Of a stretch of DNA of 64,000 nt, positions 4,971 to 44,277 are shown piece after piece. Both the position numbers and the translations under genes were made by a program. The stretch spans positions 19,828,767 to 19,892,766 of the forward strand of contig OZ037766.1 of the NCBI GenBank assembly GCA_964035545.1, given 5' to 3'. Position 1 is the stretch's first letter. Every line of letters begins with the position of its first letter. The notes beneath the pieces are model-generated. The model did not search any database and was not told where the DNA came from. It saw only the letters and a program-made list of their open reading frames with translations. Source of the DNA: Bugula neritina. Its lineage: Eukaryota > Animalia > Bryozoa.

Positions 4971-7900
4971 TTAGGTAAAAAGCTGCTTAGGTTTTATGTT
5001 GGTAGAGCTGATAGAGGATGTTTCAGATAGTCTTCTGTCAGGAGTGGCACTCCTACGCTGCTTTTCACTTTTAATTGCAAGTCTGCCATGTCTGTGTTCT
5101 TGAGTAGAGGTTCTTCTGGGCTGCAGGGGCTGTGGGGCGCCTATTGATTGTCCCGTATTATTTGATGGAATATTTCTATGTTTACCCAGCATGTTGTCAG
5201 CTTCAGTTGCTTGAAATCCTGGACCAATTGTCTTTTCAATAAAATTCCTGTTGAAAAACTGTCTCTCATGAATGACCCAATTGGATTCTTCAGCTGCCAT
5301 TACTTTATTTATCTGTAATAACTAAAAAATCAATGTACACCTGAAAAACACACCAATAATGAATTAATGTACTCTACATCAATTCATGCCCTTTTCATAA
5401 CATCTTTTTTATGTGCAATATAAATAATTTCATGCGATTGATTCATGTAATTTTTCACTCACCCAGCCTCCATCTCCATCAATCCATTCACTCACACTCA
5501 GCTCTTGAATGCTAGTTTTTGAGTTGTAGAGTAAATTCTCAAACCAGTGGAATAAGTTTTTTAATATTGGCAAGCTGTGAGCTTGTAGACTAAGCAGCAT
5601 GACACTAACATCTCCTATCAGAGTCATCACCTGAAATATGCTAAATTGCAGTCATTTTCACCAGTTAATACAAACGCTGCATTACTTTAACAAACTCGTC
5701 AGCTAAATAATTTAAATACTTGATTCAGAATTAACTATTCTATCAACAACTACGTATACTAGTCTGACTAAACTGCTGTTACTTTTTAGCCGCGCAACTG
5801 ACTACCAGCTACATCTGATAGGGCAATTGTTATTTATTGAATTTTTAAAAAAGTTGAATCATTACAAGTGTGAGTTGAACTGTTTTGGTCTGCTGCATTA
5901 TATCACAACAGTCTGTTAGAATACTTAATGTCTTCAGTAGCGGTACAGAACTGCTGTCAATGAAATACTGGCTCCAAGTACAGAAAATTTAGCATCAATT
6001 TCAAAGCAATGCTGTTGCAGTTTAGGATTTAATCTCTGCTGAATATTAATTAGAGTAGGCCCAGCACAACTTTGTGATAATATGAAACTTTATCTGATTT
6101 GATTTGTTTAAAAACTATTGAATTGTATTTAATATCAGTAGGCCTATATTGATATCATTGATGGGGTGGTCATCAACTTTGAGGACAATAAAGTATAAAG
6201 TGCAAATATAATCAACTCAACTTATGGGGCTGAATCACTGCATAGAGAAATGGCTTAAAATCATTTATCCTAACTATTTCTCACCTGACAGATAGATTGC
6301 CAAGTGTAAAACCCAACTGATAGCTTTTGGAAACATGAGAATGTCTCTAGGTACTTGATCATTACAGCAAATGGCATGTTCTTAAGTATTCGAAGTTGAC
6401 TGTCATATTCATGTTTGCCTACAAAATAGAAATAAGCAGATAGATGCATCATGTATGTATACGGAGTATGTATGCCGAGTGTATATGCCGTGTGTATATG
6501 CCGTGTGTGTTTGGAGCTGTTTTCATTTATAATTATAATATTTCTGATGTAAAAACTACTTAGTAATTGTGCACTTTCTTTAACACATGAAGCCTACGAG
6601 CATTTTTTTCAATATAAAAAAATAAACCATGACAGTTGAGGGTAGCTGAATGAACTGATATCACAGCTTCATGTATCTTAGAGAGGTGGAACAGTACCAG
6701 ACTCAACTTGCTAATTACAACCAGCAACTAACCTTGTTGACCACTAATTAGTCATACAAGTATTGTATGTAGTAATTTCGGAAAAAATAATTCATCAACT
6801 GTATTAAAATTAGTAATTTATAGTCACCAACAGTTTAAGACTGGTTAAAATGACTGGTTTGTTACAAATTGATATATAAAATAAACATACATACCTAAAA
6901 TAAACACTGCAAGTGGTGCATCTTGCAAGCTCTCTTTAATTTGCTGATCAATGACTGTATTTTCTAGTATCTGAAGAGCTTCTTTCTTTCTTTCCTGACT
7001 TATTTGAGGAATATCTAACCTAAAAGTTCAATAACAGAGAGAACAGAGCACTATTTCAGTTCATCACAAACAGGGTAATCTTCTAATAATATGTATTTAA
7101 ATTTATTAAAAATATTTCAAAGGAAATGTTTGCAAAAATGGCTCCTTATAATAGCTGCATGATGTGGTATAATAATTGAATGCAACAATTGGTATTTTAA
7201 CATCACTATTAGCATGTAAAGAAATAACCCTAAAAGTAGTACTCATAGAATACTATTGTGAGTGTGACCCTGTTACTAAACTTTTTTTCAGCTCAATATT
7301 CTTAGTTTCAAATTTGCTGACAATATTTAAAATTTTTTTATACGGAATTAGTTACATTTTCTAATCATATCAAATCACATCATTATTCTGCTCGTAGCGA
7401 ATCTGCACTAAGGATTTTTTCAGCCAACCTTTTAATATACTCAAAGTATTTTTCTACACTAAACTTAAATTATTTTTATGTTTTAAAAACAGTCTTGTAG
7501 ATTAACGTTAAAATTTGTAATAACAAATTAAAACCAACATTTTCAAAACTGCAAACATTATCTTATAATTGATGTTTATACTCACGCAACTTCAAGGTAC
7601 AAGTTAAATATTGCAGTTGTTGGTATTCTTTGGGTCATGTGTGGTGGTATAGTGAAGCTTGTATTGTTTCCTGTGAGGTCACGTATTGAAGAAGGGGAAG
7701 ATAGTTGAAAAGTTCTGCTCATGTGCTGGTTAGTTTTATGTATTGGTCTAACTCTTTCAAAGTTCTGTTGAACCAACTTCCTTGGCATAAGTCTTTTACG
7801 GTCTCTGTCGGCTAAAACTTGTCTTTGAACTATTACCCCTTGAGAATTGTCTACTAGTGCAGCTGCTTGCATTCTATAGCTGAATCGTTCCATGCTTCTT

Positions 7901-10521
7901 GATGTCATATCAATTGCTATTGTTTCTCTTTCTAATTTTGAAGCCTAAAACAACAAATTTATTAAAATATATATTTCATAATATTATTCATAAACTGTTG
8001 CGTTGCTTACTTGCTTACTAGCTTACTATATGTTTTATTCATAGTCACAAGTTTAGTTGTTTTCAGATTATAATTTATCGGTTATTAATTTTCACACCTT
8101 GTTAAGTTGTAAAAATTGTTTAGAATGACACGCCTTTTGTTGTTTCATTAGCAACAACCAAAATCTCAAGAAATAGTAACATATATACATACTCAATTTT
8201 ATGCAGTTGATTGAAGTGTTAATTACAAAAGTTGTAATGTTGAAACAAATGTTCAATTCTTATTCAAATAATTATGGTTGAGTGAAGTAAAGTAATTCTA
8301 GTTAATTTCTTTAAGTAATTATTCTGCAAATAATTTGCATGATAACAATTGGTGGCTCTATAAGTATGAAGCAATAAAAAATTTTCTCAGATCAACTAAA
8401 AAGGAAATTTATTTAATCTATTAAATATGTTTTATTAAAACACTTGAACACAACTATATAAAGAACAAAAGCATTTCCACAGTTGTTGCAACTAAAAAGG
8501 CTTTAGTTTGCCTAAAGAGATAAATTATTCCAGATGTTTCTTACTTCAGCAGCATAATTATTATTATCAACCATTTATATAAAATTTAGCTTTTTAGAAA
8601 AACTGACAACATTAATAACTTTGACATTTTCTGACAATTATTGTTCAAGACTTGTAACTAATTGTGTTTTATATATGCATTGATTCAGCATTCCTTCAAC
8701 ATTCTAAAACAATCAAAAATGATTTTGCTCGATTAAAATGTCGGAAAATAAAACTAACAGCATGGTTCGCACCTGCATCCTAAATAACTTATAAATTGTC
8801 AAACTAAACTTTTCAAACATTGCCAGGAATTATAAAACAGGTTAAAACCTGTAGCATACCCATCCACCCCTGTCTTGTATCCAGTCATCAATACTTGATA
8901 CTCTCTCTGGCTCTTGAAGAGTCTGGAAGAATTCTACACACCAGTTCACTAAGCTTCGGAATGATGCAGCAAAATTATGCAGTAAAATCATCATCCGGCT
9001 GAGCTCTCCTGTCAGTACTATCAGCTAACAGTAAAACAATTCTAACCATAATTTATATTACAAGTTGTTACTAAATATTTGTTAGTAAAAGCAGCGTAGC
9101 TTAATTTTATCTAGTTGTTAGAGTGCTAGTAGCTAGGATGACATAGGTCATACGAGCTCCTCAGACTCTTCCTGAATACTAAATGATACTTATTAATACA
9201 CACCTGGCAGATGTATCTCCAGTGGAAGGCTCCATTTCTTAGGGCGAATACAAATTCTAGTGACCCTAACTGCTGGATTAGTTCACCCTGTGGCATTTTT
9301 GATAATAGCTCCACATCAGATTGACTGATGTGATGTCCACCTAAAAGAAAAAAAATATATATAATAACTATAATATTTTAAATATTAATTTCTTAGACAC
9401 TACCCTAAACTCCTAAACTTAAATAACAAAACTTACACACCATACAACAGGCCAAACAGCTTCACTAAATACATCCATTTCAAGTCTAAACACCGATCAA
9501 ACATTAACTCAAACCTACCCTCCTCCATTAATAGATGACTATCGTCAATATTTTCTAATGAAAAAGTCTTTAAACATGTCCATACAAACCAGCAGTATCT
9601 CTCAAACAAAAGTGGCTACAAACACCAACTATACAATTCTTACCAGAACTATGGACAAATGCTACACAAAAAAAGCTGAAATAGAACAATTTCTTGGTAT
9701 AACCCCCTTTCAGTCAACAAGCAACTGCAAAAATTGTGAAACGTTTTTTAAAATCATAAGTGAAAAATTTTCAAAGCAACATTCACTTCATACATGTATA
9801 ATCATCCACAAAAACAACGTAAAGGTTAGCTACATTAGCATTCCCAATATAAGGAAAACAATAAGCACCCCTAATATACAATGCCAATATACATGTATAT
9901 GAATTATTTTTCTTCAATTTAAACTGAAATTGCCAACCTAAACTGTCTATGATGCTTGGGTCCTTTAGAATTTGACTAGCAGACTGTGAGTTTATGTTGA
10001 AACATTCTTTCAGTATCTCAATGGCTTGTGCTGCATTTTCATTTGGCAGATATACATTAGCAGAGTCAATTCTGAAAGGGGAAATGAATAAGCGATATTG
10101 AACATGTATAGTAGTTAGAATGCACAGCATTGCATCGCTTACTAATAAAATTATTATATTTCATTAAATATGAGTGTAAAAAAAACTCAAGTTAATAATA
10201 CATTAACCAAAGGTAGAATGAAAAAATTGAAATTTAAGCACCATGTAAGTGATATGTTCAGGAAGTTATCATACAGCTTCAGGAAAGACATGTTATGCAA
10301 TCATGCAGGTACTTTGTTAATGGAATAAGGAGTTTCTTTCACCCTTAGTGCTCAAGAAAGAGTAATTAGTATAGAAATTAGAAATTTGTCCAGAAAATCA
10401 CAGCCTGTTATACTATATTATGTAAATAATAGATCCTGTCTTACACATGATACAGATAAGCAATAATCACTCTAGCTGAAGTTAAAGCATCAGGTTGATT
10501 TTCATCTGGTCTCCAAGACAT
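4971..10521 (-). CDS. Divergent Bcl-2-family-like protein with two tandem Bcl-2-like domains, 9 coding exons, ~546 aa, no C-terminal TM helix
   Basis: Exons 10521-10445, 10071-9938, 9340-9204, 9024-8860, 7944-7586, 7019-6895, 6418-6285, 5630-5463, 5312-4971; all GT-AG and phase-compatible (1641 nt). Domain 1: ALTSARVIIAYLYHV...ALRNGAFHWRYICQLIVLTGEL...LVNWCVEFF...IDDWIQDRGGW. Domain 2: TTAIFNLYLEVALD...KLSVGFYTWQSICQVMTLIGDV...LFHWFENLL...VSEWIDGDGGW. Each has a BH2-type WIxxxGGW followed by a phase-0 intron. Confidence 0.8.
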
Positions 10522-11995
10522 CTTTAAAGTGGAGAAAACTTCAGTGTTTCTCAGCTAATGTTTGTATATGTAAACATGAACCCCTAATTCTTGTGAAATT
10601 ATGTGACAGTATAAAAAGTATTTGTTTCTTATGTTGCTAGGCTCCATCAGCTGCTGTTCAGCATAACTATGCAACATAAATATCTACTACATGGGCTTTG
10701 CTAAAAGCTTTACAGCTTTCAGGCAAATCACACCTATAGCAATGCAACCCAAAGTTTTTTCAAATTGATTTATATAGTTTTAATACGTGAACAATACAGT
10801 ATAAATTATTTAATGGCATGAAATCAGAAAAAACAGGACTGTTGATAAAATTAAATTGCAACATATAATAAGTTTTTATATACTTTTAAAACAGTCTGCT
10901 GCCATTTCAAATGCATACTATTTGGAATAACTTTGAATAAAACTAAATATTGATGTTTATTACAAACATAGTTTTTTTTATAAACTAACATATAATAATT
11001 TAGGATTGCTTCTTTTTTATGAAATCAAAAGACAAAGAGAGTTATAAATTTGGCACAGAAGTTTTTGTAGCTATGGTTATAGTCCTGAAATGGTTGCAAA
11101 GGATGCATCAAGAAAATAAATTAGAAAATTATATTCCCTCTCCTTTCATATAACCATATAACCATTTGCAGTCTAGCTTGTTGTTAAACCACTATAAATA
11201 TTTAGTATATTTTTTCAGCTATACTAAAGGCATAAGTTTAAATTATGACTGTGCAGTAAATTAAGGTAAAATGTGAGATATATACCATTAAAGAAAAATA
11301 TCCAAGTAAAGTAACCTTTAACATGTACATAAATGCTTTCTACTAAAACAAAGTCTTCCTATTCTCTAATGAATTTCACTTCAGTTGGCCATATTTGTAA
11401 ATTCTGCATAGACTTCAGTCATTCAGTGTAATATCAGTGTATTTATTATTTAGTCCGAGCAAGATTGGTACTGCTGTATTTCCTCAGTTATGATTCAAAA
11501 GAGCTTTAAAATTTTATATTACTTTTGCTAAGTGAAATAGCATTTATTGAACTATTCTATGTACTATATAGGGTTTATAGGCATACCAATTCTTATATGT
11601 GGTAAAACTGAAATAACTGAAAAACTGAAATATGCTTTAAAAGTAAACCATAAGAGACTGTTCGAGAAAGTAACTACAGTATTAAAAAGTACGGAAATAC
11701 TTCTTGTGCTAAAATTAGAATCAAACTAGCTGCTAGTATAAATTGTTATGCTCTATAAATTGAAAGTTGATTACTTTCTTCTTAGATTCTTTACAGAATG
11801 GTAACTAGCCAACAGTAAACAAATAATTAAATAAAATGCTTTTCAAGAGCTTTTTGAAAAATAGCTGATGTTATTCTGTACAAGCTTTGTCAGAGGGGGC
11901 ACTAAAACATTCGAGGCTTTAAAAATATTTGCATCAATTTCTAGCAGGTGCACATTGTTTTTGCTTTCTGAACTTGCAGAGTGGTTGAAAGAGTC

Positions 11996-14900
11996 ATGTG
12001 GAGAACTGACTCACAAATGAGTCTCCCAAGTTTACCTGACGAAGAGGAAACAAGTGCTGATGATGTAATGACTTCAGTGGAAGTTATTCAATACTATCTG
12101 GTCAAAAGGTAAGAACTACTAATGAGAATAATACATGTATGTTTAGTGTCTGTATGCAGCTGTCACTAAAAGTCTGTCTGATGCAGGTAAATTCTACTTT
12201 GAAGTAGTATCCTCCATTCATTAATATTTATCTGTTTAATACAACATTTATCAACCTAATTGTCACTGATAGTAATCTTCATTCATTATTGACTATTTAA
12301 TGAGATATTTTAACATGGAAATGAAAAAAAGTTGAACCTAACGCCATACAGTAGTGGCAATAATGTGGTGCCTTTATGTTGAAACTATGTGGTACAAAAC
12401 TATCTTTAGATGTGGCATTGTAGATAGCTCTACTATTAAAGCTATAGGCAAGTGTACTTGTATGTGTTGAAAGCACACTATAACTATTTGATTCTAGATT
12501 TATATTGTACATTATTAATATAATTCTAGACTATATGAATATTATGACAAGCACCGATATGAAGTAGTTTCTACAGCTGCCTTATTAAAGAAGTTATACT
12601 ATCCTATAAAAGAGGCAGTTAGATATAGAAGCTATGCTCCAAGAACTGTGGAAGAACTAGGTATGTGTAGAGTAGTTAGGTATGTGTAGAATAGTTAGGT
12701 ATGTGTAGAATAGTTAGGTATGTGTAGAATAGTTAGGAATGTGTTGAATAGTGAGGTATGTGTAGAATAGTTAGGTATGTGTAGAATAGTTAGGTATGTG
12801 TAGAATAGTTAGGTATGTGTAGAATAGTTAGGTATGTGTAGAGTAGTTAGGTATGTGTAGAATAGTTAGGTATGTGTAGAATAGTTAGGTATGTGTAGAA
12901 TAGTTAGGTATGTGTAGAATAGTTAGGAATGTGTAGAGTAGTAAGGTATGTGTAGAATAGTGAGGTATGTGTTGAATAGTTAGGTATGTGTAGAATAGTT
13001 AGGTATGTGTAGAGTAGTTAGGTATGTGTAGAATAGTTTGGTATGTGTAGAATAGTTAGGTATGTGTAGAATAGTTAGGAATGTGTAGAGTAGTAAGGTA
13101 TGTGTAGAATAGTGAGGTATGTGTTGAATAGTTAGGTATGTGTAGAATAGTTAGGTATGTGTAGAGTAGTTAGGTATGTGTAGAATAGTTAGGTATGTGT
13201 AGAATAGTTAGGTATGTGTAGAATAGTTAGGTATGTGTAGAGTAGTAAGGTATGTGTAGAATAGTTAGGTATGTGTAGAATAGTTAGGTATGTGTAGAGT
13301 AGTAAGGTATGTGTAGAATAGTTAGGTATGTGTTGAATAGTTAGGTATGTGTAGAGTAGTTAGGTATGTGTAGAATAGTTAGGTATGTGTTGAATAGTTA
13401 GGTATGTGTAGAGTAGTTAGGAATGTTGATATGGTTTCTCTACGTGTGACTACTTAACATACCTAGTATATGCATGTAACATTGTGATTCAGGTAAGCAT
13501 GGAGGTAGCAAGTCTTGGCTACAGACACTTCTAGCTCTGCCTATAGAAAAGATGACAGTCTGCCTAGAGAATACAGACTGTGCTTTGAAGTTAAAAAATG
13601 GCTTCGTATCTTGGGAGTTGATATGTCAGGTATGGGTATAAAATGTGTAACCATAATGTAGCTATTGCTAGACTATAAATGGTTCTCGTGATGCATAGGC
13701 TACTAGGCTTCATGATAGATTCTGAAATTTCAATACTAAAAAGTCAAAGCAAATGATTGGTATGTGGATATCATTTAAAAAAGCTAACTCAATTATTATA
13801 GAACAGTTGTGTGTGTGTGTGAACCTGCGAAATGATTTAATGTGTGATCACAACTTCACATGCAGTAAATTTTGGAATGAGAGATTGATTAATTTAAAAC
13901 TATGTCAGCATTTAGTTTTTAATATAAATTTGTTTTACTATTTTAAATTTTAATTTATCTGTAACTTTAGGTTTAAAAATTTGCAAAAATTGTAACCTTT
14001 GAGAGCAAAATAATTTTCTCATCGAGGCTTTTGTTGTAGGTAATAAAAACTTTTGAAAATGTTATAAAATATTTGGTTAGATAATGACTTGCCTGTGTAA
14101 CAGATTATAGTGATAGTTGGAGATCTCTGCTGCTTAGTGCTTAAAAAACAAGCCCTGAATTCTACTGAAAACAAGGAAGTGCCGATGGTTATGGAGCTTG
14201 CTGAGTGGTGTGCAGAGTTTTTTGTAACCCCATGGCAGGGCCAGCAATGTGTAGAGCATTGGATAATAGCACATGGTGGATGGGTAAGAGAAACATCAAT
14301 CAATGATTATTTTAAGAAATTTAGCTGCCATGTTGAGACGTTTTAAATTTTCTAACAAATTTATTACACACACAACACACTCACAACGCACACACACCAC
14401 ACTCTTTAGGTACATATAATATGTACTTATAAATAATATGTATAAGTATATCAGTTGTGTTGTTTTAGGTAAACAAAATTGATGAAAATAACCAATTGGT
14501 GAACAAGTTAACAGCAAAATGGCAAAGTATGTCGCCCAACAGTTCACCATCTTCTGCACAAATAGTTTGCCCTAAACCTGTAAGACTGTGTAAAGGAGCA
14601 GTGATAGCAAGATCCAGCAATGCCATTCCGTCAAACACAATTTCGACTGGTGACTCTGTTACAGCTGCGAATTCTGTTGAAAATCTAAGGAGTAAAAATA
14701 GAATTTCATCAACATCTATGCAGCAGGATGAAGCATTATCACTTACAGCACCAGCTCAAAACTCATTCTCACCATATTTTGTAAATGGAAAGGAACATAA
14801 AACAGCTTCAGCGGTAGTAAACTTAACCCCTAGCTTTATGTCATCTCATCTTGACGATTTACATCAACTGCATGAAACCCAAGTAACACTTAGTGCACTT

Positions 14901-17585
14901 CATGAAATCCCAAACTCTACTAAACAGATGCTGATGCAGCAACATGAAGTTCTACCAGAAACAAGGCAACAACATGAAGTTCTACCAGAAACAAGGCAAC
15001 AACATGAAGTTCTACCAGTAACAGGGCAACAACCTAGAGTTCTTCCAGTAACAGGGCACCAACCTGGAGCTCTAACAGTAGCAGGGCACCAACATGGAGC
15101 TTCACCACTAACAAGGCAACAACACGGAGTTTTTCCAGTAGCAGAGCAACAGCCTGGTGTTCTTCCAGTAACAGGGCATCAACCTGGAGCTTTAACAGTA
15201 ACAGGGCAACAACACGGAGTTTTTCCAGTAGCAGAGCAACAGCCTGGTGTTCTTCCAGTAACAGGGCATCAACCTGGAGCTTTAACAGTAACAGGGCAAC
15301 AACACGAAGTTTTTCCAGTAGCAGAGCAACAGCCTGGTGTTCTTCCAGTAACAGGGCATCAACCTGGAGCTTTAACAGTAACAGGGCAACAACACGGAGT
15401 TTTTCCAGTAGCAGGGCACCAACATAGAGTTCTTCCAGTAGCATGGCAACAAAATAGAAATTTAACAGTAGCAGGGCAACAGCATGGAGCTTCACCACTA
15501 ACAGGGCAACAACACGGAGTTTTTCCAGTAGCAGGGCAACAGCCTGGTGTTCTTCCAGTAACAGGGCATCAACCTGGAGCTTTAACAGTAACAGGGCAAC
15601 AACACGGAGTTTTTCCAGTAGCAGGGCACCAACATAGAGTTCTTCCAGTAGCATGGCAACAAAATAGAAATTTAACAGTAACAGGGCACCAACATGGAGA
15701 TTTAACAGGGCACCAACATGGAGATTTAACAGTAACAGAGCACCAACATGGAGTCATGCCAGTAACAGGGCAACAACATGGAGTTTTAACAGTAACAGAG
15801 CAACAAAATGAAGTCCTACCACCACCTTACCCAACTTTTATTCATCAACATCAAGTTCCATCAATGTTAATGAGGCAGAATGGTGGACACACAGTAGTAG
15901 AATCAAGCTGTGGTGTCCCAACACCAACTCTTGCAAGCTCAATCCAACACTATAAGAATCTAACATCATCAGGAAACTCTCATACTATGTCAGGATCATC
16001 CTTTGCAAATGCAATGCAACTACATGGGCTTTCACAAATGAATAATCCAAGTTACAGTGCAACATTAATGCAGCAGCATAGAAATCCTTCAACAGAACAA
16101 CTTTGTAATAGTACCCCACAGATGTTGGCAACTCCAATACCTCAGCATAAATTACAGCCAAATTTATTGTATCAACAGAGTAATTCAACTATGGCAAATT
16201 TTGCCAATCCATTATCACCTTTTAACACTTTAGTGCAAAAGCGTGTAGCAATTATGGAGGCAGAGTCAAATATCTCAATGCCATGTCAGGCTGCTTCAAT
16301 TTATCAGCATAAAATTTCACAGACTCTGATGCACCAGCCCGAATTACCAGGATTAAACTATGACAATCAACCAGCTCCAATTGCACCTTTTAACTTGGAG
16401 CATGCAGTCCCATCAATGATGAGATTAGGCCATAATACCTTAGCACCTTCTCGCCAAACCTCAACTTATCAGCCTAGTGTTGCACCAATTTTATTGCAAC
16501 AGCTTGAAACATTGCCAATGACAGAGCCAATTCACAGTGTCTCAAAATGTCCTCCAGCACCTATAATATATCAGCATAAATTGCAACTATCACATATACA
16601 ACAGCCTCACACTTTAAAAGAACAAAACTATTTCAGTCAGCCTCTTTCAGGTGCCATCTCTGTGCAACAATGGAGAGATGGAATGATGGTAAGACAAACT
16701 CAAAGTAATCAAAAATGTCATGTCACTTCAACATATCAGCATAAAGTTTCACCAATCTCAGTAAAACACCATGAAACTTCAGAAATGGCAGAATCTAGTT
16801 ACATCAATCCAACATATTTTTGTGCAAATTCAGCTCATGAAAGTTCACCAGTTTTAGCACATCAATTTGTAGCTTCAACAGCAGGAGAAGAAAACAGCTT
16901 TGTTTCATCACCACCTCTGATCATCTCAACTAAAGAGTATGGAGTTACATCTCCAAGAGAACCAGTCAATAGTGCTCAACCACCAACATTGGTGCAGCAG
17001 CTCGCAGCACCAACAGCAACACAACTTGGCAATGCTCAAACTACATCTTTAGCAGCTTCTATTCAGCATGCAAGTCTTGCAGCAGTAAAACCAAGCTACT
17101 TGGATTTACCATCACCTGGTGAACACTTGATGCAACAAAATGAAAATTCATTTCAAACAAAGACAAATTCTATTGTCTTGCCATCTTTTTGCAACAGGTC
17201 AGTGCAACCAGAAAGAGTACCAGAAACTTCAATTTCAAATCACGATGATGCTATAACACAGCTAAAAGTTGTGGAAACGGAAAAGTTTGAACTACATGCA
17301 GAAAAAACAAAATCTGCTTTTATGCCATGGAGTTTACAGAGAAATGTAAAACGTAGCTTAGCTGACACACCTACATCAGCAACATCTAAATTTTATCAAA
17401 AGCAAGCTAAAATGTCTAACATTGAAGCAGAACCTTTGAATAACACAAGTTTCCAATTTTATAAACATTCTAATGATAGAGAGAGCAGAGGTGATGCAGA
17501 GAGGCTCGATAATACTACAGAATCCATTTATACTGGTCAACCTCACGTTATTTCTATGAATAGCAACACATATTTTAGACTCTAA
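11996..17585 (+). CDS. Divergent Bcl-2-family-like domain fused to a ~1040-aa low-complexity Q/H/P/S tail with decapeptide repeats, 5 coding exons, ~1225 aa
   Basis: Exons 11996-12108, 12530-12660, 13493-13629, 14104-14283, 14469-17585; GT-AG, phases 2/1/0/0 as in both domains of the neighbouring gene. VMTSVEVIQYYLVKR...KLKNGFVSWELICQIIVIVGDL...LAEWCAEFF...VEHWIIAHGGW|VNKI. The last exon contains the 1029-aa ORF. Alternative in-frame ATG at 12017; AATAAA near 17738. Confidence 0.82.
12661..13426 (+). repeat. 19-bp minisatellite (gtatgtgtagaatagttag) x ~40 filling intron 2
   Basis: Head-to-tail 19-mers with minor variants (gagtag, gtaag, gtgag, gaatg), starting exactly at the intron 5' end. 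Confidence 0.97.
14937..15818 (+). repeat. Coding 30-bp tandem repeat (~30 decapeptides, consensus [Q/H]Q[H/P]GV[L/F]PV[T/A]G)
   Basis: QQHEVLPETR, QQHGVFPVAE, QQPGVLPVTG, HQPGALTVTG etc., with 3-unit and 6-unit higher-order blocks. Confidence 0.95.
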
Positions 17586-18808
17586 ATCTCACTCCCAGGT
17601 TTATTTCTCAAGTATACCAAACATTGATTAGATAGCTCTATTGGCTAAAGTGCTCCAAAAACCACTCAAGTCTCTGGTTAAAAGATGAATAGAGAAGTTA
17701 ATTGAATTTTGCATATTTTACATATAGTAACGTTTTCAATAAAAAATGTGCTATTTTTCATTACGTTGTGTTTATTTTTGAACTTATATTTTGAATTATT
17801 TATATTTTAAGGCAATTGCAAGATTTATTTATAAATTACATGCATTTCTGCTGTTAGTGTGTTACTCATGCAAATTTTCTATTTTTCTTTAAAACATGCA
17901 TTTAAGAGCTTCATAATCATTTTCTACTACAAGCAGTTTTAGCTTACCAAAATCTAATATCAGAGTTAAATAATGTAATTTCAAAACTGCTAACTGTTGA
18001 TTAGGTCTTTATTGGAGCAGTTCATATTAATTTAGTTAAATGCTTATAGTGCAGTGCAAAGTTGCATGTGAGTTCTTGTAGCAATTGTTAGCCATGATTG
18101 GAATAGGTTTTGATGTAACTTTTGACTATGGCACATGGATGCATAAAATTAACTACTCTTTCATTTGAATAAGATTGCTTTTATCATTTTCTGGTCACAT
18201 TATTATATATATGCATTATTTGTTGAATTAAATACCAAGCATTATGTTTTATAGTTATTTAGTTGAAACAATTTAAAACAGACAGATATCTTACTAGGTG
18301 AATGTTTTATTTTGATAATTGTAAAAAGTTTTTAAATTTTGTAAAATGCTTAGCTGGAATATAAATATAATATATTCATCTAAATCAATTTTTTAAATGT
18401 TTTTAACTTATAATCTATAAAGTGTGTATACTGTTGCCTGAGCATGCAGTATATAGATGTGTGTTAAAAAGTTAGTGCAGCTGGTGTAAACTATCAGCTA
18501 ACTAAATAGACTAGGTAGGAAGTGTCAACTTTATATTTTTAATTTTAGAAAAAATGAACATATTATGAATGTTGTGGTGCACTAACAAAAATAATCAACA
18601 TCAACAGCCAACATCAATCATTAACAAAACTTAAACATAAACAACAGTTTTATCAAAGATGTAAAAGAAAAGCTCAAACATTCAACAAAAAACTCTAAGT
18701 AGTATTTAAAACTATTTGAATAAAAGTTACCATAGCAATAAAATGTTTCTTGTAACACAGTTTTTAGTTTCCCAAAGAAGTTGTCATCAATCACTAATAC
18801 CAGCCTTT

Positions 18809-19341
18809 CTAATATAAGGTTTCTAAAAATAGTTTGTATTTTGTAAATATAGCATTAAGATAAATATACAAACGTTCAGAAAACTGAAATTTGATAATTG
18901 AGTTTGCATTTATAGCCTAAATACAGCATAGTTACTATATATTAGGTTAGTTTATACATGTACATATCATAAACCTTTTACTTTCCAACATCTTTTTATA
19001 GTTTAGATATAACAAACAAATGAATATTAGAGTATATGTCAAGTCAAGTCGCCAAGTCATCCTTTTCATATAACTTAAAAATAATAAATTGGAAACTTAC
19101 TAAAACCGATGCCATAACCTTTTCCTCCATACTGTCTACGCCCATGCAATCCAAAGTTGAACCCATTGAAAAGCCCAAACCCTTTTCTCCCAAAGAAAGA
19201 GTGTTTTCTGAATGACAATCCATGAAGCCCACTATAGCCAAGACCAGTTAACCCTCCATACCCTCCAGGAAGACCATAGTAATTGACATAAGCTGATGAC
19301 AAAGCAACGCAAAGCGATAGAATAACAGCCAATACCTTCAT
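18809..19341 (-). CDS. Secreted glycine-rich peptide 1 (~84 aa)
   Basis: Signal peptide MKVLAVILSLCVALSSA, then a G/F/Y/K/R-rich mature region. Main exon 19341-19101, donor GTAAGT, proposed micro-exon 18822-18809 (KTLY*). This micro-exon is the least certain of the four; unspliced, the ORF ends at 19075. Confidence 0.82.
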
Positions 19342-19772
19342 AGTGTCTTTTTAGCAACCTAAAAGGAAACAAGTAGATCATTTCTATTTTTTATAATTTC
19401 ATTGCACACACATCAGTTTTCATACTCAGAAAAGTAATTGTAAGTTGATTTTTGCTTACAAAGTTTTATATGCAAACTTTTATGTTGTAAAGCAAAATAA
19501 TTCAGATTACTCTAAACTTCAAAACTCTGCCAGAAACGAAACACGATATTAAGGTTTTGGGTTTAGTCAAGCAGTAGTTCAATTTTCAGATAATTTTAGT
19601 CAACAATAATGGCTATGATAGCCATTGTGTTGCAATAATTTTACGGCAAAATAGCAAAGTTAAAAAAAGTTTTACTCAACTATTTTAAAGGTATATATAC
19701 CAAACTTACCTTCAGTTAAATTGTTGTCTGACTGCTGTGAAAACTTTGATAGTACGAAGCAGCATGAGCCTT

Positions 19773-19779
19773 TTTTATA
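19773..19779 (-). promoter_or_regulatory. TATA box of glycine-rich peptide gene 1
   Basis: TATAAAA on the minus strand ~65 bp upstream of an AAG|GTAAGT donor (19709) closing a non-coding first exon; the same layout is seen in all four paralogs. Confidence 0.65.
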
Positions 19780-20796
19780 GTAAATTTCTGTATCATTAGA
19801 TAGGTGGAATGCAATTAATAATTTTATAATATGATGGCTTCTTGGCTACTAGTGGAAATGTAAGTGTTTGATGTACAACTCCTTGATCAATGCTGTCAAG
19901 TTTTCACATCCTGTCTGAATAAGTTTCAAAAGATGGTCTAAAAAAGAAATTCCTCAACTTGATAAATGTTTCTCCTCTCTTGTACTATTTAGCAATAATA
20001 TGTATCCAATATAATTTAGTAGCATATTCAAGCAATAAAATATTATAGTCAAGTTGAATTTTTCATTAACTTTGGAAATTGTTATTGGCTTACGTTATGC
20101 TATTAAAAGATTGGCACACTCAACTTTCTTTTACGGCAAAAGTTTCTAGATCGTAAGAATTTATGACATATGTTGAAAACTTGGGATATTTTTAGATATT
20201 GGCTTAATGAGCATATAATGAATAAATTTTTGCAACTACACTTTTTATTGAAAGCTTTCTATAGCACCACATATTAACATTGTTTGCCTCTAATGTCACA
20301 TTAGATAAGTTTTACACAAATTTCAAAAATGTTTTCAGCGAACAGCTTTTTTGTTTCTGTAATTGCACTTTATACTATTGTTAGTGTGGATTTGTTAGTA
20401 TTGTAGAATACTTTAGTTGTGAACATCTATTGTCTGCTTTATATGCATACAGCATGCATAACTGACTTTTATATTGTTTCCGGTAATAGCCATATACGTC
20501 TTGTAAATTTATATATCAATACTGTTCGCTGTTGATTTTGTCAATTTGGCATGTTGCTTTACTTTTCTACATGTGCTGGCAACACTGTTTTGTCGCAATT
20601 CACTGTACAAAGGTGCTCCTATTTGGCAGAAACTGTCAGTTCTGTCAAATGACATCAAGAGAAAGGTAAAGTTCTTGATTTTGTTTTTGATGCCTTGTTG
20701 GAGCTTCCTAATCAATTATATTAATAAACTGAGGAAAATTGTCATGTCAATTAATTTTCTTACTAAGTTATTCTCTAGAAACAGCTAATTGAACCG

Positions 20797-21105
20797 AAAC
20801 ATACATGCAATGGCATCAGTGAAGGAGGCTATTTAAAGTCAAAATACACAAATCACAAAGCATCATATAAGCACACGGGTGAAAGTGCATCACACGATAT
20901 TAAGCAAGTATGTGTGGAACTTAGTTGACCAAAACATTGAATACAACAAAACATGGAAAATAGTCAAGGAATCGACAGTGTACAACACAAACACACTAAA
21001 TGATGCAGAATGTTTTTTCATACTGTACAGATCACAACTGTGTACTTTGAACAAAAGGATGAGCTGCTATCAACATGCTGGTACTCAAAAAAGAATTTCT
21101 ACTTT
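20797..21105 (+). mobile_element. Decayed Penelope-like element, GIY-YIG endonuclease C-terminal fragment
   Basis: Across frameshifts: GISEG..LKSKYTNHKASYKH / HHTILSKYVWNLVDQNIEYNKTWKIVKE...FFILYRSQLCTLNKR / ELLSTC. This resembles the PLE endonuclease pattern FKxRYxNHKxSF...T-LSKHIWxLK...WKI...LNKRxELxSxC. Confidence 0.7.
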
Positions 21106-22165
21106 GTATTTACAATAACTATTTTTTTAATATATTCTATAACTTCTGATTTCAATTATTATTCAAAAATATAAACATGCAGCTACCATCACTTAATATT
21201 CCTCATGCGATGTTTTATTATTCTCGATGTGTCACTTGACAAAATCTAAACGCAAATGTACCTGATACATATATATGCTACAAAAAGCATACTAAACCAT
21301 TAGTTGCGTCGTGAAAAAAAAGACATTTACAAATCACTTTATTTATTAATTGTATGACTGCTTATTATCAATACTATATTAATTTAAACAATTTTAGTCT
21401 ACTGTTAGGTAAATCCACTCTAGGAATATATGAGTGTGCATGTGAGTGAGCATATGTGCATATATGGATATAATAATATATGTGTATGTGTATATAGGCC
21501 TACTAACCTACTTTAAAATAACACATATAAGAGCTGTAAGCATATTATACTTTAACTTACCATTATTTGTGAGATTATAAATGCTTTAACTGTCCGCCAT
21601 GTATGTTTTTTTCTTAAATTTTATATTAGTGAAATAGAATAGATGTAAATTACAAAATGTTATAGTTTGTGTCTGTATGCAAATAATATTTTTGTTAACT
21701 TCTATTCTTGTTTGCTTTGTTCTATGTTAAAAGCACTTTTCAATTTCATTCACAATTTACTGCTATATGTTGAATGGCCATAGTTTCTTTTTGGGGAATA
21801 CCATGCAGCCAAAAGCTTTGACTGCTTGTAATGTTAAGTCATGCCATGTTCATATACTCTTTGCATCCCGTGAAAATATTATATTAATAAACAAAATATA
21901 CAGGGTACATAGAAATCATTAATGAACAGAAACTATTGATAAATGAAAACAGGGACTTGAAACTCCTGTTTGAAATTCATTGTAGTAGACAGTGCGTAAT
22001 AGAACATGTCTTCAAAGGACCATGCTGTAATCTCAGAAACCAGAATGTTTCTTTCTAAAATCCTTTGATATATAAACAATGCATGTATTTAGCAATGTAG
22101 CTAAGTTAATATTTAATTTTTCTCTCTGTCTGTGCTATATTTTGCAAACATTCTTTAAGGGAGCG

Positions 22166-22475
22166 AGTGTATGTGTATGTATAACATGCACATGTACATA
22201 TGTGTATGTATGTGTATATACACATATGTATGTATTTGTGTTTGTGTGTGCATTTGTTTATTGGTGTATGTTTGGGTGTATGTACGATATGTGTTGGTTT
22301 ATATGTCTGTGTATTCATGTGAATATGTGTGAGTATGTGCGCCTGCGCATGCAGCATGTGGGTTAGCGCATGTCCTTGTGTGTATGTTTGCACCTATATG
22401 TGCATATGCTTGCATGCGTGTTGTGTATAAGTGTGTATACGTGTGTATGAATGAATGTATAAATGTATGTGTGTT
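22166..22475. repeat. Degenerate (TG/TA)n low-complexity tract
   Basis: Imperfect tgtg/tatg repeats; these generate the spurious ORFs at 22079, 22106 and 22299. Confidence 0.85.
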
Positions 22476-22902
22476 AGCCATATGATAAATTAAAACAAGG
22501 ACACCTATGGCAAGCATGAATCTTCAAAAAAGTTTTAAAATTTTTCGGATTGGCTTAATTGGTTTTCACAAAAGACTAAAACATAACGCTTACTATTTAT
22601 GGCAAAAGAAATCTTCAGTTATTAAAAGTTCTAATAGAATTTTAGACTTTAGATTTACAGGTTATGAAAGAGATTGCTTTGAACACAATGCATTAAAGCA
22701 TATCTTCTTATAATCTTAAATGATAAGAATATTTATCTTAATGAGTTACTGCTTCCTGAAGTAGCAGTAATAGTTATATGAAAAGTATTCAAGTTGACAA
22801 CAGTATGATTAATGAGACCAATTATAGGTTTCCTTACACCTGATTGGTATGCAGACAGGCACTTAGTTTACAATAATATAAAAAATAAAATAAAATGTAT
22901 TA

Positions 22903-23099
<197 letters not shown>

Positions 23100-23591
23100 A
23101 GTAAATTTAGGTTAAAATAGCAATAAATTTGTTTTTAAGTAGCATTCAAATAAAAATTCTACAGCTTGCAATTTATTCTGATTTAATTTATGGTTGCTGT
23201 AAGAATTTTGATACATCTTTGAAAGAATCTTGCCAGTTTTGTTAAGAATCATTTATCACATTACAACTTCCTGAGATAAAATATTCAGACTATTAAATTA
23301 TCTGTGAGTTAATTATGCTTTACGTGTGGAAATTCAGTAAAGTGGCTACTTTAATGTGCTGATGTAACCACTTTTAAAGCATCAAAAATCTATTGCTGTA
23401 TTTTAAGTAGTTCGTCACAAAAACTGGCATATTGCCATGTTTCAAGAACATTACTGCCAGCTTTTCAAAATCAACACTGGTAACTTTTTAAATTATTGCT
23501 AGTTATAATGCTGGCAACTTTCAAAAACCCTTCTCGGTGACTTTCCGAGTGTACTTCTAATTGCTTTCCATGAACATTACCCATAGAAATG

Positions 23592-23775
23592 CATGCAAGT
23601 TTATAGTCCTTATCCATGTGAGAACCCCTGATGGAAAATATTTTTTCATACTGGGCTAAAGAATTTTTCACATGTGACAGAGTAACTATGACTGGATGAT
23701 TTTTCTACCATCACCAATAACTTTTACTGAGAATCAAACCTCCAACTCTTAGGCTCAGACTATGCCCTAACTCCT
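23592..23775 (-). mobile_element. SINE copy (tRNA-head family; 4 copies in window)
   Basis: Reverse complement aligns by eye with 39930-40118 and 46438-46633 (catccagtc.taa/atcaggggttctcaca/ataaacttgc blocks). Confidence 0.65.
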
Positions 23776-24245
23776 AAACTACAGGTACTTAAATTTTCCA
23801 TGAACATTGCTGACAAATTTTACGTAATATCATATTATTGGTAAATTTTTAAAAATTAATAATGTATTGAATAGTTGCGTTTGAGTTTTTTGTAGCCAAT
23901 AAAAATTGTGTAATGTTTTAAACCAGGTGCTTCATTAATTTTCATTTTTACCACATTGCTTATTTTTCTAAAAAGTGTGTTGATTAAAAAAATTTACATA
24001 ATAATACAACAATTATGTAAAAACATGAAAGTTTTCAAATAAATAGTTTGAAACTTGTTTTACTACAGTGCTCGACTTTCATATCTCACAGCTTTAGCTC
24101 TCAATATATTCTATTGGTCATGAGAAAGGCTTGAACTTCTTTTTGTGGCTTATGTGTGTATGTATAGGAACAAATTTAACGTATCTATGAGTTAAATATG
24201 GCATTCTACTATGGCTTGGATGAAAGTTTCAATACCCAAGGCTTA

Positions 24246-43195: not shown

Positions 43196-43887
43196 ATAGC
43201 TGAGTTGATATGTGAAAAGCTATCATGCATTCCCAACTTATGTAAAGTCTCAACAGTAGACATAAAAGTTCTTATTGGTATTAAAAATGATTATTGAACC
43301 AATAAGGTTATTATAATGGAAAAGGTACTAAAGTAGCTGGGAACTACTTGACTTTATGGCTTCAATCCAATAAACTGCATTAACAGAACAGCCTACTCAT
43401 ATTAATTTCTCCACCGATTTTGAACATATCTAGTTGAATTGTGTACAGTATTCCATGGATGCTGCATAAAGACACTATTTCACAAGCAATTTAGAATGTG
43501 TGATGCTAACACAGAATTGATTTCGGTTTTGTGTCATTGTCAACTTAGCTTTGTTTCTTTGCCAGGAGACATTAGTACTTTATAGAATTAAAAACAGGTT
43601 ACTGCACTGCATTATTAATATTTTTCTGAATGCAACTCAGTATTATTTGTAAATAAGAAAGGTATAATAAGTTGTGTTTTGATGCGCTCAATATATATTA
43701 CTTTTTTATCTTTAGGTTGCGATATACAAGTTTATTTTTTCTCGATGTGTAATAGGTATGTACGTATCATAATAATATGGTACACATACTAAGCAAAATA
43801 AAATCTGTTACCCAACAAATTGAAACTAATAACTACTATATATATGAATTTATATATATATATATATATATATATATGGTAGTCTGT

Positions 43888-43934
43888 TCTGTGCTGATAA
43901 GGGGACAAACCCCGAAACAGCTGCTGTCCACAGA
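43888..43934 (+). ncRNA. Type I hammerhead ribozyme, copy 1 (core CUGAUAA, G8A variant, probably impaired)
   Basis: tctgtg CTGATAA gggg-acaaa-cccc GAAA cag-ctg-ctg TC cacaga. Confidence 0.75.
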
Positions 43935-44163
43935 TTGAGGTATTATGCTCTCACTTAATGCTCAGCAATGACATTCAGTGATTGAGCTCTCTCTCACCAT
44001 ATGGTCACAAACTCAAGCTGCTAGCATTTTGCAAGGCTCGTGACTCCTAGGTTACCCCTAGAGTCACTTGAGCTCTCTGGCTTGAGTTTACACACCTTTT
44101 GAATATGCTTTAGCAGAAACATAGGTTTCTACTATTGCGAAGGTGTGGGCCATGGTACTCTGT

Positions 44164-44210
44164 TCTGTGCTGATGAGGGGACAAACCCCGAAACAGCTAC
44201 TGTCCACAGA
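44164..44210 (+). ncRNA. Type I hammerhead ribozyme, copy 2 (intact core)
   Basis: Stem I tctgtg/cacaga, CUGAUGA, stem II gggg/cccc, GAAA, stem III cag/ctg, GUC cleavage triplet (cut 3' of 44204). Confidence 0.92.
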
Positions 44211-44213
44211 TTG

Positions 44214-44216
<3 letters not shown>

Positions 44217-44277
<61 letters not shown>
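44217..44277. repeat. (TA)n microsatellite
   Basis: Perfect TA run; a second run at ~43851-43877 flanks the other side of the retrozyme-like element. Confidence 0.97.

Follow-up and report, generated by a model that had tools for sequence, protein, structure and literature searches.

In a 64,000-nucleotide (nt) stretch of the genome of the bryozoan Bugula neritina (contig OZ037766.1, positions 19,828,767 to 19,892,766; hereafter the window), we found a head-to-head pair of genes, here called A and B, spanning window positions 4971-17585. The explanation that we consider probable is that both are real, divergent genes derived from the Bcl-2 family and devoid of membrane anchors, with two domains in gene A, and that their products are soluble and non-classical. 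Nearly everything known of the Bcl-2 proteins, which belong to the most thoroughly studied cell-death regulators, derives from single-domain, mostly membrane-anchored members acting through a BH3-in-groove contact (BH, Bcl-2 homology). The locus departs from this usual picture in that the BH2 helix and the introns are kept, the anchor and the groove residues are lost, and two domains are apparently joined. Its main interest is the probable two-domain Bcl-2 protein.

Gene models and the repeated exon cassette

Eukaryotic in character, the window has a G+C content of 31% and long introns, and it is part of contig C2 in an assembly of 216 Mb. Models were built from GT-AG introns and frame bookkeeping only; the joined exons were used for codon and stop counts, and all similarity searches and Pfam scoring were performed exon by exon. 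In the resulting models all 12 introns are GT-AG and there are no internal stops. Gene A, on the minus strand, has nine exons (1,605 nt, 534 codons) and two domains, and gene B, on the plus strand, has five exons (3,678 nt, 1,225 codons) with one domain followed by a tail of 1,038 residues. The start codons are divergent, at 10521 (minus, MSWRPD) and 11996 (plus, MWRTD), with 1,474 nt between them, in agreement with the distance of about 1.5 kb given in the first-pass annotation of this stretch.

Three related units, two in gene A (A1 and A2) and one in gene B, share two motifs. W[ILV]xxxGGW occurs three times in the six-frame translation of the whole window (8883 and 5486 on the minus strand, 14260 on the plus strand; mean in shuffled sequence 0.00), as does WxxICQ (9221 and 6302 minus, 13612 plus; shuffled mean 0.06), each WxxICQ preceding one GGW on its own strand. 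The shared signature described earlier is thereby borne out, both motifs lying where they had been placed, three times each against about zero expected. The same is true of the intron phases, which in all three units are 2 after the first helix, 1 before G[K/G]H, 0 after ICQ and 0 after GGW, and of the lengths of the exons running from GH to ICQ, namely 137, 134 and 137 nt (9340-9204, 6418-6285 and 13493-13629). At the protein level, tblastx connects exon c of gene B with those of A1 (E = 2.5e-4) and A2 (E = 1.1e-5), and exon d of A1 with that of A2 (E = 0.017). When exon c of gene B was searched against the entire genome, the sole non-self match was exon c of A2, about 7 kb away, and the exon of type G[KG]H...WxxICQ has three copies genome-wide, all within the window. 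The first-helix exons are also alike across the units (TSARVIIAYLYH, TSVEVIQYYLVK and PTTAIFNLYLEV). Taken together, this supports the proposal of one cassette used three times in a head-to-head pair. The exon-d peptides were too short for a tree to show whether the units belong to a single clade. One ancestral five-exon unit, consisting of a first helix, a BH3-region exon, an exon ending at the BH1 position, an exon ending in WIxxxGGW and a tail exon, probably gave rise to genes A and B by inverted duplication.

Exon a of gene A (10445-10521, minus) starts with ATG at MSWRPD, carries a BH4-like first helix (..ARVIIAYLYH) and ends in a phase-2 donor, GT/gtaaga (the slash marks the exon boundary here and below). 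Its counterpart in gene B (11996-12108, plus) starts at MWRTD and has the first helix ..SVEVIQYYLVK and the phase-2 donor AG/gtaaga. In A2 the corresponding motif is found at the end of a stop-free linker exon of 359 nt (7586-7944, minus), which follows a phase-0 acceptor, starts with ASKLERE and ends with ..IPTTAIFNLYLEV and the phase-2 donor GC/gtgagt. The b exons consist of 98 nt in A1 (9441-9538, minus; HLLMEEGRFELMF.., a BH3-like remnant), 125 nt in A2 (6895-7019, minus; the best-fitting exon with one leading and one trailing base) and 131 nt in gene B (12530-12660, plus; LYEYYDKHRYEVV...). The c exons, all followed directly by gt, read GGHH...NGAFHWRYICQ in A1 (9204-9340, minus, 137 nt), GKHE...VGFYTWQSICQ in A2 (6285-6418, minus, 134 nt) and GKHG...NGFVSWELICQ in gene B (13493-13629, plus, 137 nt). 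The d exons, comprising the rest of alpha5 to BH2 in A1, read LIVLTGE...NWCVEFF...DDWIQDRGGW in A1 (8860-9024, minus, 165 nt), VMTLIGD...HWFENLL...SEWIDGDGGW in A2 (5463-5630, minus, 168 nt) and IIVIVGD...EWCAEFF...EHWIIAHGGW in gene B (14104-14283, plus, 180 nt). Gene A terminates in a basic, Ser/Arg-rich tail exon of 113 codons plus stop (4971-5312, minus), and gene B in a Q/S/P/T-rich tail exon of 1,038 codons plus stop (14469-17585, plus). The latter includes a 30-nt tandem repeat of 29.7 units (14936-15821, plus), encoding about 30 decapeptides of the type QQHGVLPVTG.

Conservation in a sister species

For comparison, we used four public contigs of a related species, the sister, which have about 83% nucleotide identity to the window, introns included. 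Contig L001 covers window positions 8598-24200, L032 covers 8289-6768, and L033 and L034 together cover 6073-4198. Eight of the nine gene A exons and all five gene B exons are thereby covered, exon c of A2 being the sole model exon outside these contigs, and every covered exon is open, including exons a (in L001) and A2 b of gene A. The indels in exons measure 3, 21 and 9 nt, all multiples of three, while the introns have many out-of-frame indels. The frame of the linker exon is kept in L032 with solely in-frame deletions of 18 and 3 nt. At a synonymous divergence of about 19%, the ratio of the proportions of nonsynonymous and synonymous differences (pN/pS) is 0.29 for the domain exons together (binomial p = 1e-9) and 0.33 for all exons. 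It varies between 0.11 and 0.39 among the c and d exons (A1: 0.11 and 0.18; A2 exon d: 0.39; gene B: 0.22 and 0.30), and amounts to 0.52 and 0.48 in the b exons of A1 and A2. Exon b of gene B is 95% identical to the sister sequence, as compared to about 82% in the flanking intron. The gene B tail, with a pN/pS of 0.78, is near-neutral, and is nevertheless open over more than 1,000 codons in both species, with in-frame indels only; the sister open reading frame (ORF), P0001, has 75% identity to it. Exon d of A2 is likewise matched by a sister ORF (P0005). The stops of both genes are conserved, that of gene A being identical in L033 and L034. Because the sister exons are open, the exon indels are in frame and pN/pS is low, genes A and B can be regarded as functional, selectively maintained coding genes, and not as relics.

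The same contigs bear on some candidate exon boundaries. For exon b of gene A, a second possible acceptor at 9598, which would lengthen the exon by 20 codons (158 nt in total), is doubtful; the sister has an in-frame TAG in these 20 codons upstream of HLLMEEG (L001 ~940, corresponding to window ~9580), so this acceptor is either species-specific or unused. A candidate for exon b of gene B at 12342-12467 was rejected, as this segment contains a stop and an indel of 2 nt in the sister, and so was a short 'LNKV*' near 8100, considered as the terminal exon of the first unit, because it is not kept in L032.

Descent from the Bcl-2 family

The derivation from the Bcl-2 family that the first-pass annotation had proposed is carried mainly by exon d. 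In the Pfam scoring against PF00452, exon d of gene B matched with 13.9 bits (E = 0.08, profile positions 63-100) and that of A1 with 11.5 bits (E = 0.47, profile positions 70-100), both alignments ending at GGW, and no match was obtained for exon d of A2 or for exons a-c. The suggested PF00452 check consequently gave weak, correctly placed hits for two of the three exons ending in GGW (GGW exons), all of them single exons scored below the family cut-off of 31.4 bits. A profile was constructed from the three GGW exons of the window and two sister orthologues. With hhalign, it aligned at 96.8% (E = 2.7e-10) with 16 paralogous GGW exons, all of which match PF00452, at 96.4% with the GGW exon of L006, a paralogue bearing NWGK, and at 91.7% with canonical Bcl-2 proteins ranging from bryozoan to bird, where the alignment again ended at GGW. 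These alignments span 27-45 columns and include the W-x-x-E-[FY]-[FL] helix. When the profile was compared to the PDB, all 32 hits up to E = 10 were BCL2 or BAX structures, spanning PLVDNIALWMTEYL to WIQDNGGW, each being insignificant alone. A single-sequence PDB search with exon d of gene B returned chance hits to N-myristoyltransferase only, and the ESM Atlas gave no usable match for the same exon.

The intron positions point in the same direction. The GGW is followed by a phase-0 gt intron in all three units, and the genome holds at least 23 distinct GGW exons, 20 of 23 directly followed by gt, making the locus one of many Bcl-2-type loci in an expanded family. A second phase-0 intron, five residues past the BH1 tryptophan, is at the same position as in the paralogues L006, L008, L022, L017 and L018; since many paralogues have an exon spanning profile positions 55-100, an intron just after BH1 appears normal in this lineage. 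With canonical Bcl-2 proteins (BCL2, BCL-xL and BAX, and in this genome L002, L006 and L008) the units share WIxxxGGW with its phase-0 intron, the W-x-x-E-[FY]-[FL] helix, a tryptophan motif at the BH1 position, a domain of about 175 residues, an amphipathic first helix and, as in the paralogues, the intron after BH1. They differ from them in the replaced NWGR, the missing LxxxGD and anchor, the unrecognizable BH1 exon and the long disordered tails and linkers. Descent from the Bcl-2 family hence has good support, which comes from one exon, from two intron positions and from the general layout.

Loss of canonical motifs

As the first-pass annotation had noted, the NWGR of BH1 is replaced in all three units, by HWRY in A1, TWQS in A2 and SWEL in gene B, leaving the tryptophan and the following hydrophobic residue. 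Across the units, the glycine has become R, Q or E and the arginine Y, S or L. The accompanying statement that no LxxxGD is visible was slightly wrong. The full motif is indeed absent from all three units, and gene B and A2 have nothing comparable; exon b of A1, however, keeps a BH3-like stretch (LLMEEGR-FELMF), i.e. LxxxG followed by R instead of D and then by an FE-rich helix.

Also correct was the claim that neither gene has a transmembrane tail. A hydropathy scan identified no hydrophobic C-terminal membrane anchor in the tails of gene A or B, both of which end at stops conserved in the sister. The maximum 19-residue Kyte-Doolittle means are 0.82 for the gene B tail, -0.07 for the gene A tail and 0.68 for the linker; the linker and the tail of gene A each have a net charge of +8. 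The canonical paralogues L006 and L008 do have an anchor, and the tandem canonical paralogues on contig C3 each have their own tail exon with alpha8, a membrane anchor and a stop, so that the absence of an anchor in genes A and B is a derived state.

Alternative explanations

Judging from the exon structure, gene A probably encodes a single protein of 534 residues with two Bcl-2-type domains, in which case the unit 1 tail exon would have merged with the initial exon of unit 2, giving rise to a two-domain protein. The linker exon is what bears most directly on this. At position 7944, where a strong acceptor (tttgttgttttag/) is located, identity to L032 climbs steeply. The ATG at 7908 is situated 36 nt further downstream, and between these two positions the sister differs from the window solely by one synonymous third-position change. 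The acceptor is in phase 0, which fits the phase-0 donor after GGW at 8860, and the exon is open for 119 codons in both species, with a phase-2 donor after a first-helix motif, as in exon a. Its start, ASKLERE, resembles the starts of the tail exons of the other units, i.e. VNKIDEN in gene B and INKVMAAEE in the second unit. The minus strand could instead carry two tandem genes, the first ending between 8860 and 7945 and the second starting at the ATG at 7908 (MTSRSMERF...), which we regard as unlikely. The 108-codon ORF at 7908-7582 does begin with this ATG, and the canonical Bcl-2 paralogues of the genome do sit in tandem as separate genes. Against such a split speak the conservation and open frame starting already at 7944 and the likeness of ASKLERE to the starts of other tail exons. 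Two genes would moreover leave the first unit without any exon after GGW, the read-through VCYRF* not being conserved in the sister, and positions 8859-7945 look neutral, with out-of-frame indels, where they are covered (8290-8597 is uncovered).

The remaining explanations are far less probable. That gene B is the bryozoan counterpart of BCL2L13 (Bcl-rambo) seems highly improbable. BCL2L13, a mitochondrial mitophagy receptor, has a Bcl-2 domain, a long repeat-bearing insert and a membrane anchor, and gene B is like it in the order of its parts, with an N-terminal Bcl-2-type domain followed by a long, non-homologous region of low-complexity repeats. Gene B nevertheless lacks the C-terminal anchor that BCL2L13 needs, its stop being conserved in the sister, it has no detectable sequence relation to BCL2L13 and no protein match outside the sister species, and its closest relatives are the two gene A domains next door, which argues for a local duplicate rather than an old orthologue. 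We give even less credence to the exons being relics of dead Bcl-2 genes, in spite of the badly eroded family motifs and of there being no annotated protein in the public protein sets searched; all 14 exons keep frame, phase and GT-AG sites, the domain exons have the low pN/pS given above at about 19% synonymous divergence with in-frame indels only, and a frame of 1,038 codons is open in both species. Least credible of all is a different fold sharing with Bcl-2 only the short motif WIxxxGGW, as might be proposed from the fact that one of the four cassette exons is detectably similar, with Pfam scores of 11.5 and 13.9 bits against a cut-off of 31.4, and that exon c is without any hit. The profile alignment, however, extends over 27-45 columns, including the W-x-x-E-[FY]-[FL] helix, two intron positions with their phases are common to the canonical paralogues, the length of the units and the order of the helices are right, and the stretch formed by ICQ and [LIV]xxxxG[DE] runs across the intron in the same manner as alpha5 in L006.

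Several points weigh against the explanation that we favor, i.e. two real genes derived from the Bcl-2 family with two domains in gene A. Exon c is unrecognizable to the profiles, giving 2.4% and 0.1% in hhalign against canonical BH1 exons and no match in PDB or Pfam. Exon b has no significant similarity between the three units (lengths of 98 or 158, 125 and 131 nt), and its acceptor in gene A appears weak or ambiguous. All splice junctions are predictions from genomic DNA alone, and the ATG at 7908 within the linker exon could be where a second, separate gene begins. The fold evidence consists of the lone exon d and of exon pieces: folded alone, exon d gave one long and one short helix with a predicted local distance difference test (pLDDT) score of 76, which says little on the fold, and when the pieces from exons b, c and d were co-folded as three separate chains, the score was 0.00, which counts neither for nor against it. 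Finally, the functional statements below are all read from missing motifs.

Distribution and paralogues

A profile search of 1.84 billion representative proteins matched only the exon ORFs of the sister species, together with four low-complexity or repeat false positives, and no locus could be confirmed in two scans of metagenomes, for which the exon-d alignment and the linker ORF, respectively, served as queries. No homologues outside the two species were thus found in the protein-set and metagenome searches. This supports the earlier suggestion that genes A and B make up a lineage-restricted subfamily. Nor did our literature searches turn up any account of Bcl-2 genes from bryozoans or of Bcl-2 domains in tandem.

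Outside the window, the closest paralogues form a tandem pair on contig C9, L017 and L018 (E ~1e-3). They resemble genes A and B in their exon plan, in a BH1 that is not canonical, in tails that apparently lack an anchor and in being clustered, while the exon of type G[KG]H...WxxICQ and the decapeptide tail of gene B are found only in the window. The pair (G000 C9:7164974-7165069 and 7169477-7169581; L017, L018 and L049) is a recent duplication with TWENI at BH1, followed by an open frame of 154 codons with no obvious anchor.

A repeat resembling the gene B decapeptides, QQQ-x-GALPVQ, occurs at the C-terminus of P0002, a protein of 1,160 amino acids from the Joint Genome Institute (JGI) that contains an amino-acid transporter domain (PF01490) and originates from another sample. 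This is probably a low-complexity resemblance only.

Possible mode of action

Canonical members need the glycine and arginine of NWGR for BH3 binding. With both replaced in all three units by residues that are bulky or lack a charge, classical BH3-in-groove action at the mitochondrial membrane is unlikely, and the products probably do not act by this contact. They would rather be soluble Bcl-2-fold proteins in which the canonical groove contact is disabled, most likely serving within the large Bcl-2 expansion as adaptors or decoys in the cytosol or nucleus and not as membrane gatekeepers, with the disordered tails and the linker providing other contacts. Poxvirus proteins such as N1, A52 and M11L likewise have Bcl-2 ancestry or a Bcl-2 fold with the BH motifs largely erased, some of them being anchorless and repurposed from BH3 binding. 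The units of genes A and B are similar to these motif-poor viral proteins in their eroded BH motifs and in the absence of an anchor seen in some of them, but differ in having kept BH2 and the intron positions of the family, and in being cellular, multi-exon and part of an expansion of paralogues.

A more specific arrangement, which we consider distinctly improbable, is that gene A encodes a built-in pseudo-dimer, i.e. two Bcl-2 folds packed together in a soluble role off the mitochondria, for example with the BH3-like helix of domain 1 in a remodelled groove of domain 2, amounting to a covalent Bcl-2 heterodimer. Gene B would then be made from the same promoter region as gene A and be its partner or scaffold through its repeat tail.

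Bryozoans are colonial animals whose zooids degenerate and regrow in cycles. From this locus and the other Bcl-2-type loci of the genome, a large and still unannotated expansion of Bcl-2-fold proteins put to new uses seems to have taken place in this group. Genes such as these are missed by standard annotation and Pfam thresholds. If the proposed explanation by two soluble, anchorless Bcl-2 derivatives is true, it would provide a natural test case for roles of the Bcl-2 fold away from mitochondria.

Intergenic region, repeats and structural variation

The 1,474-nt intergenic region (10522-11995) includes several blocks that are 85-95% identical to the sister, at 10640-10790, 11177-11260, 11459-11640 and around 11726, in surroundings of 55-80% identity. 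These blocks could be promoter elements or untranslated exons. Together with the head-to-head layout they allow a shared promoter of genes A and B, for which the region is a candidate.

Most of intron 2 of gene B is occupied by a minisatellite of 19 nt with 40.5 units of TAGGTATGTGTAGAATAGT (12658-13426, plus). It begins exactly at the donor of exon b, and a splice-donor sequence, AG/GTATGT, is present in every unit. The sister's copy (L001 4068-4575) has about 27 units.

Within gene A, about 430 nt of the intron after the linker exon (window 7112-7541) are absent from L032, having been either inserted on the side of the window or deleted on that of the sister. A DNA run of the same species (X1), consisting of heterozygous genomic DNA, shows no exon joints and displays dense heterozygous differences across the locus. 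Its contigs break at window 9351-9383, in the gene A intron that separates exons b and c, and have unrelated loose ends on either side of the break, which suggests a structural variant in this intron in the other haplotype.

Lastly, about 770 nt downstream of the gene A stop, the sister has a copy (L033 1862-2110, L034 1790-2035) of a retrozyme-like element that is found at 43876-44253 in the window. The window itself is without a copy at the former site, which suggests that the element is mobile or, at the least, repeated.

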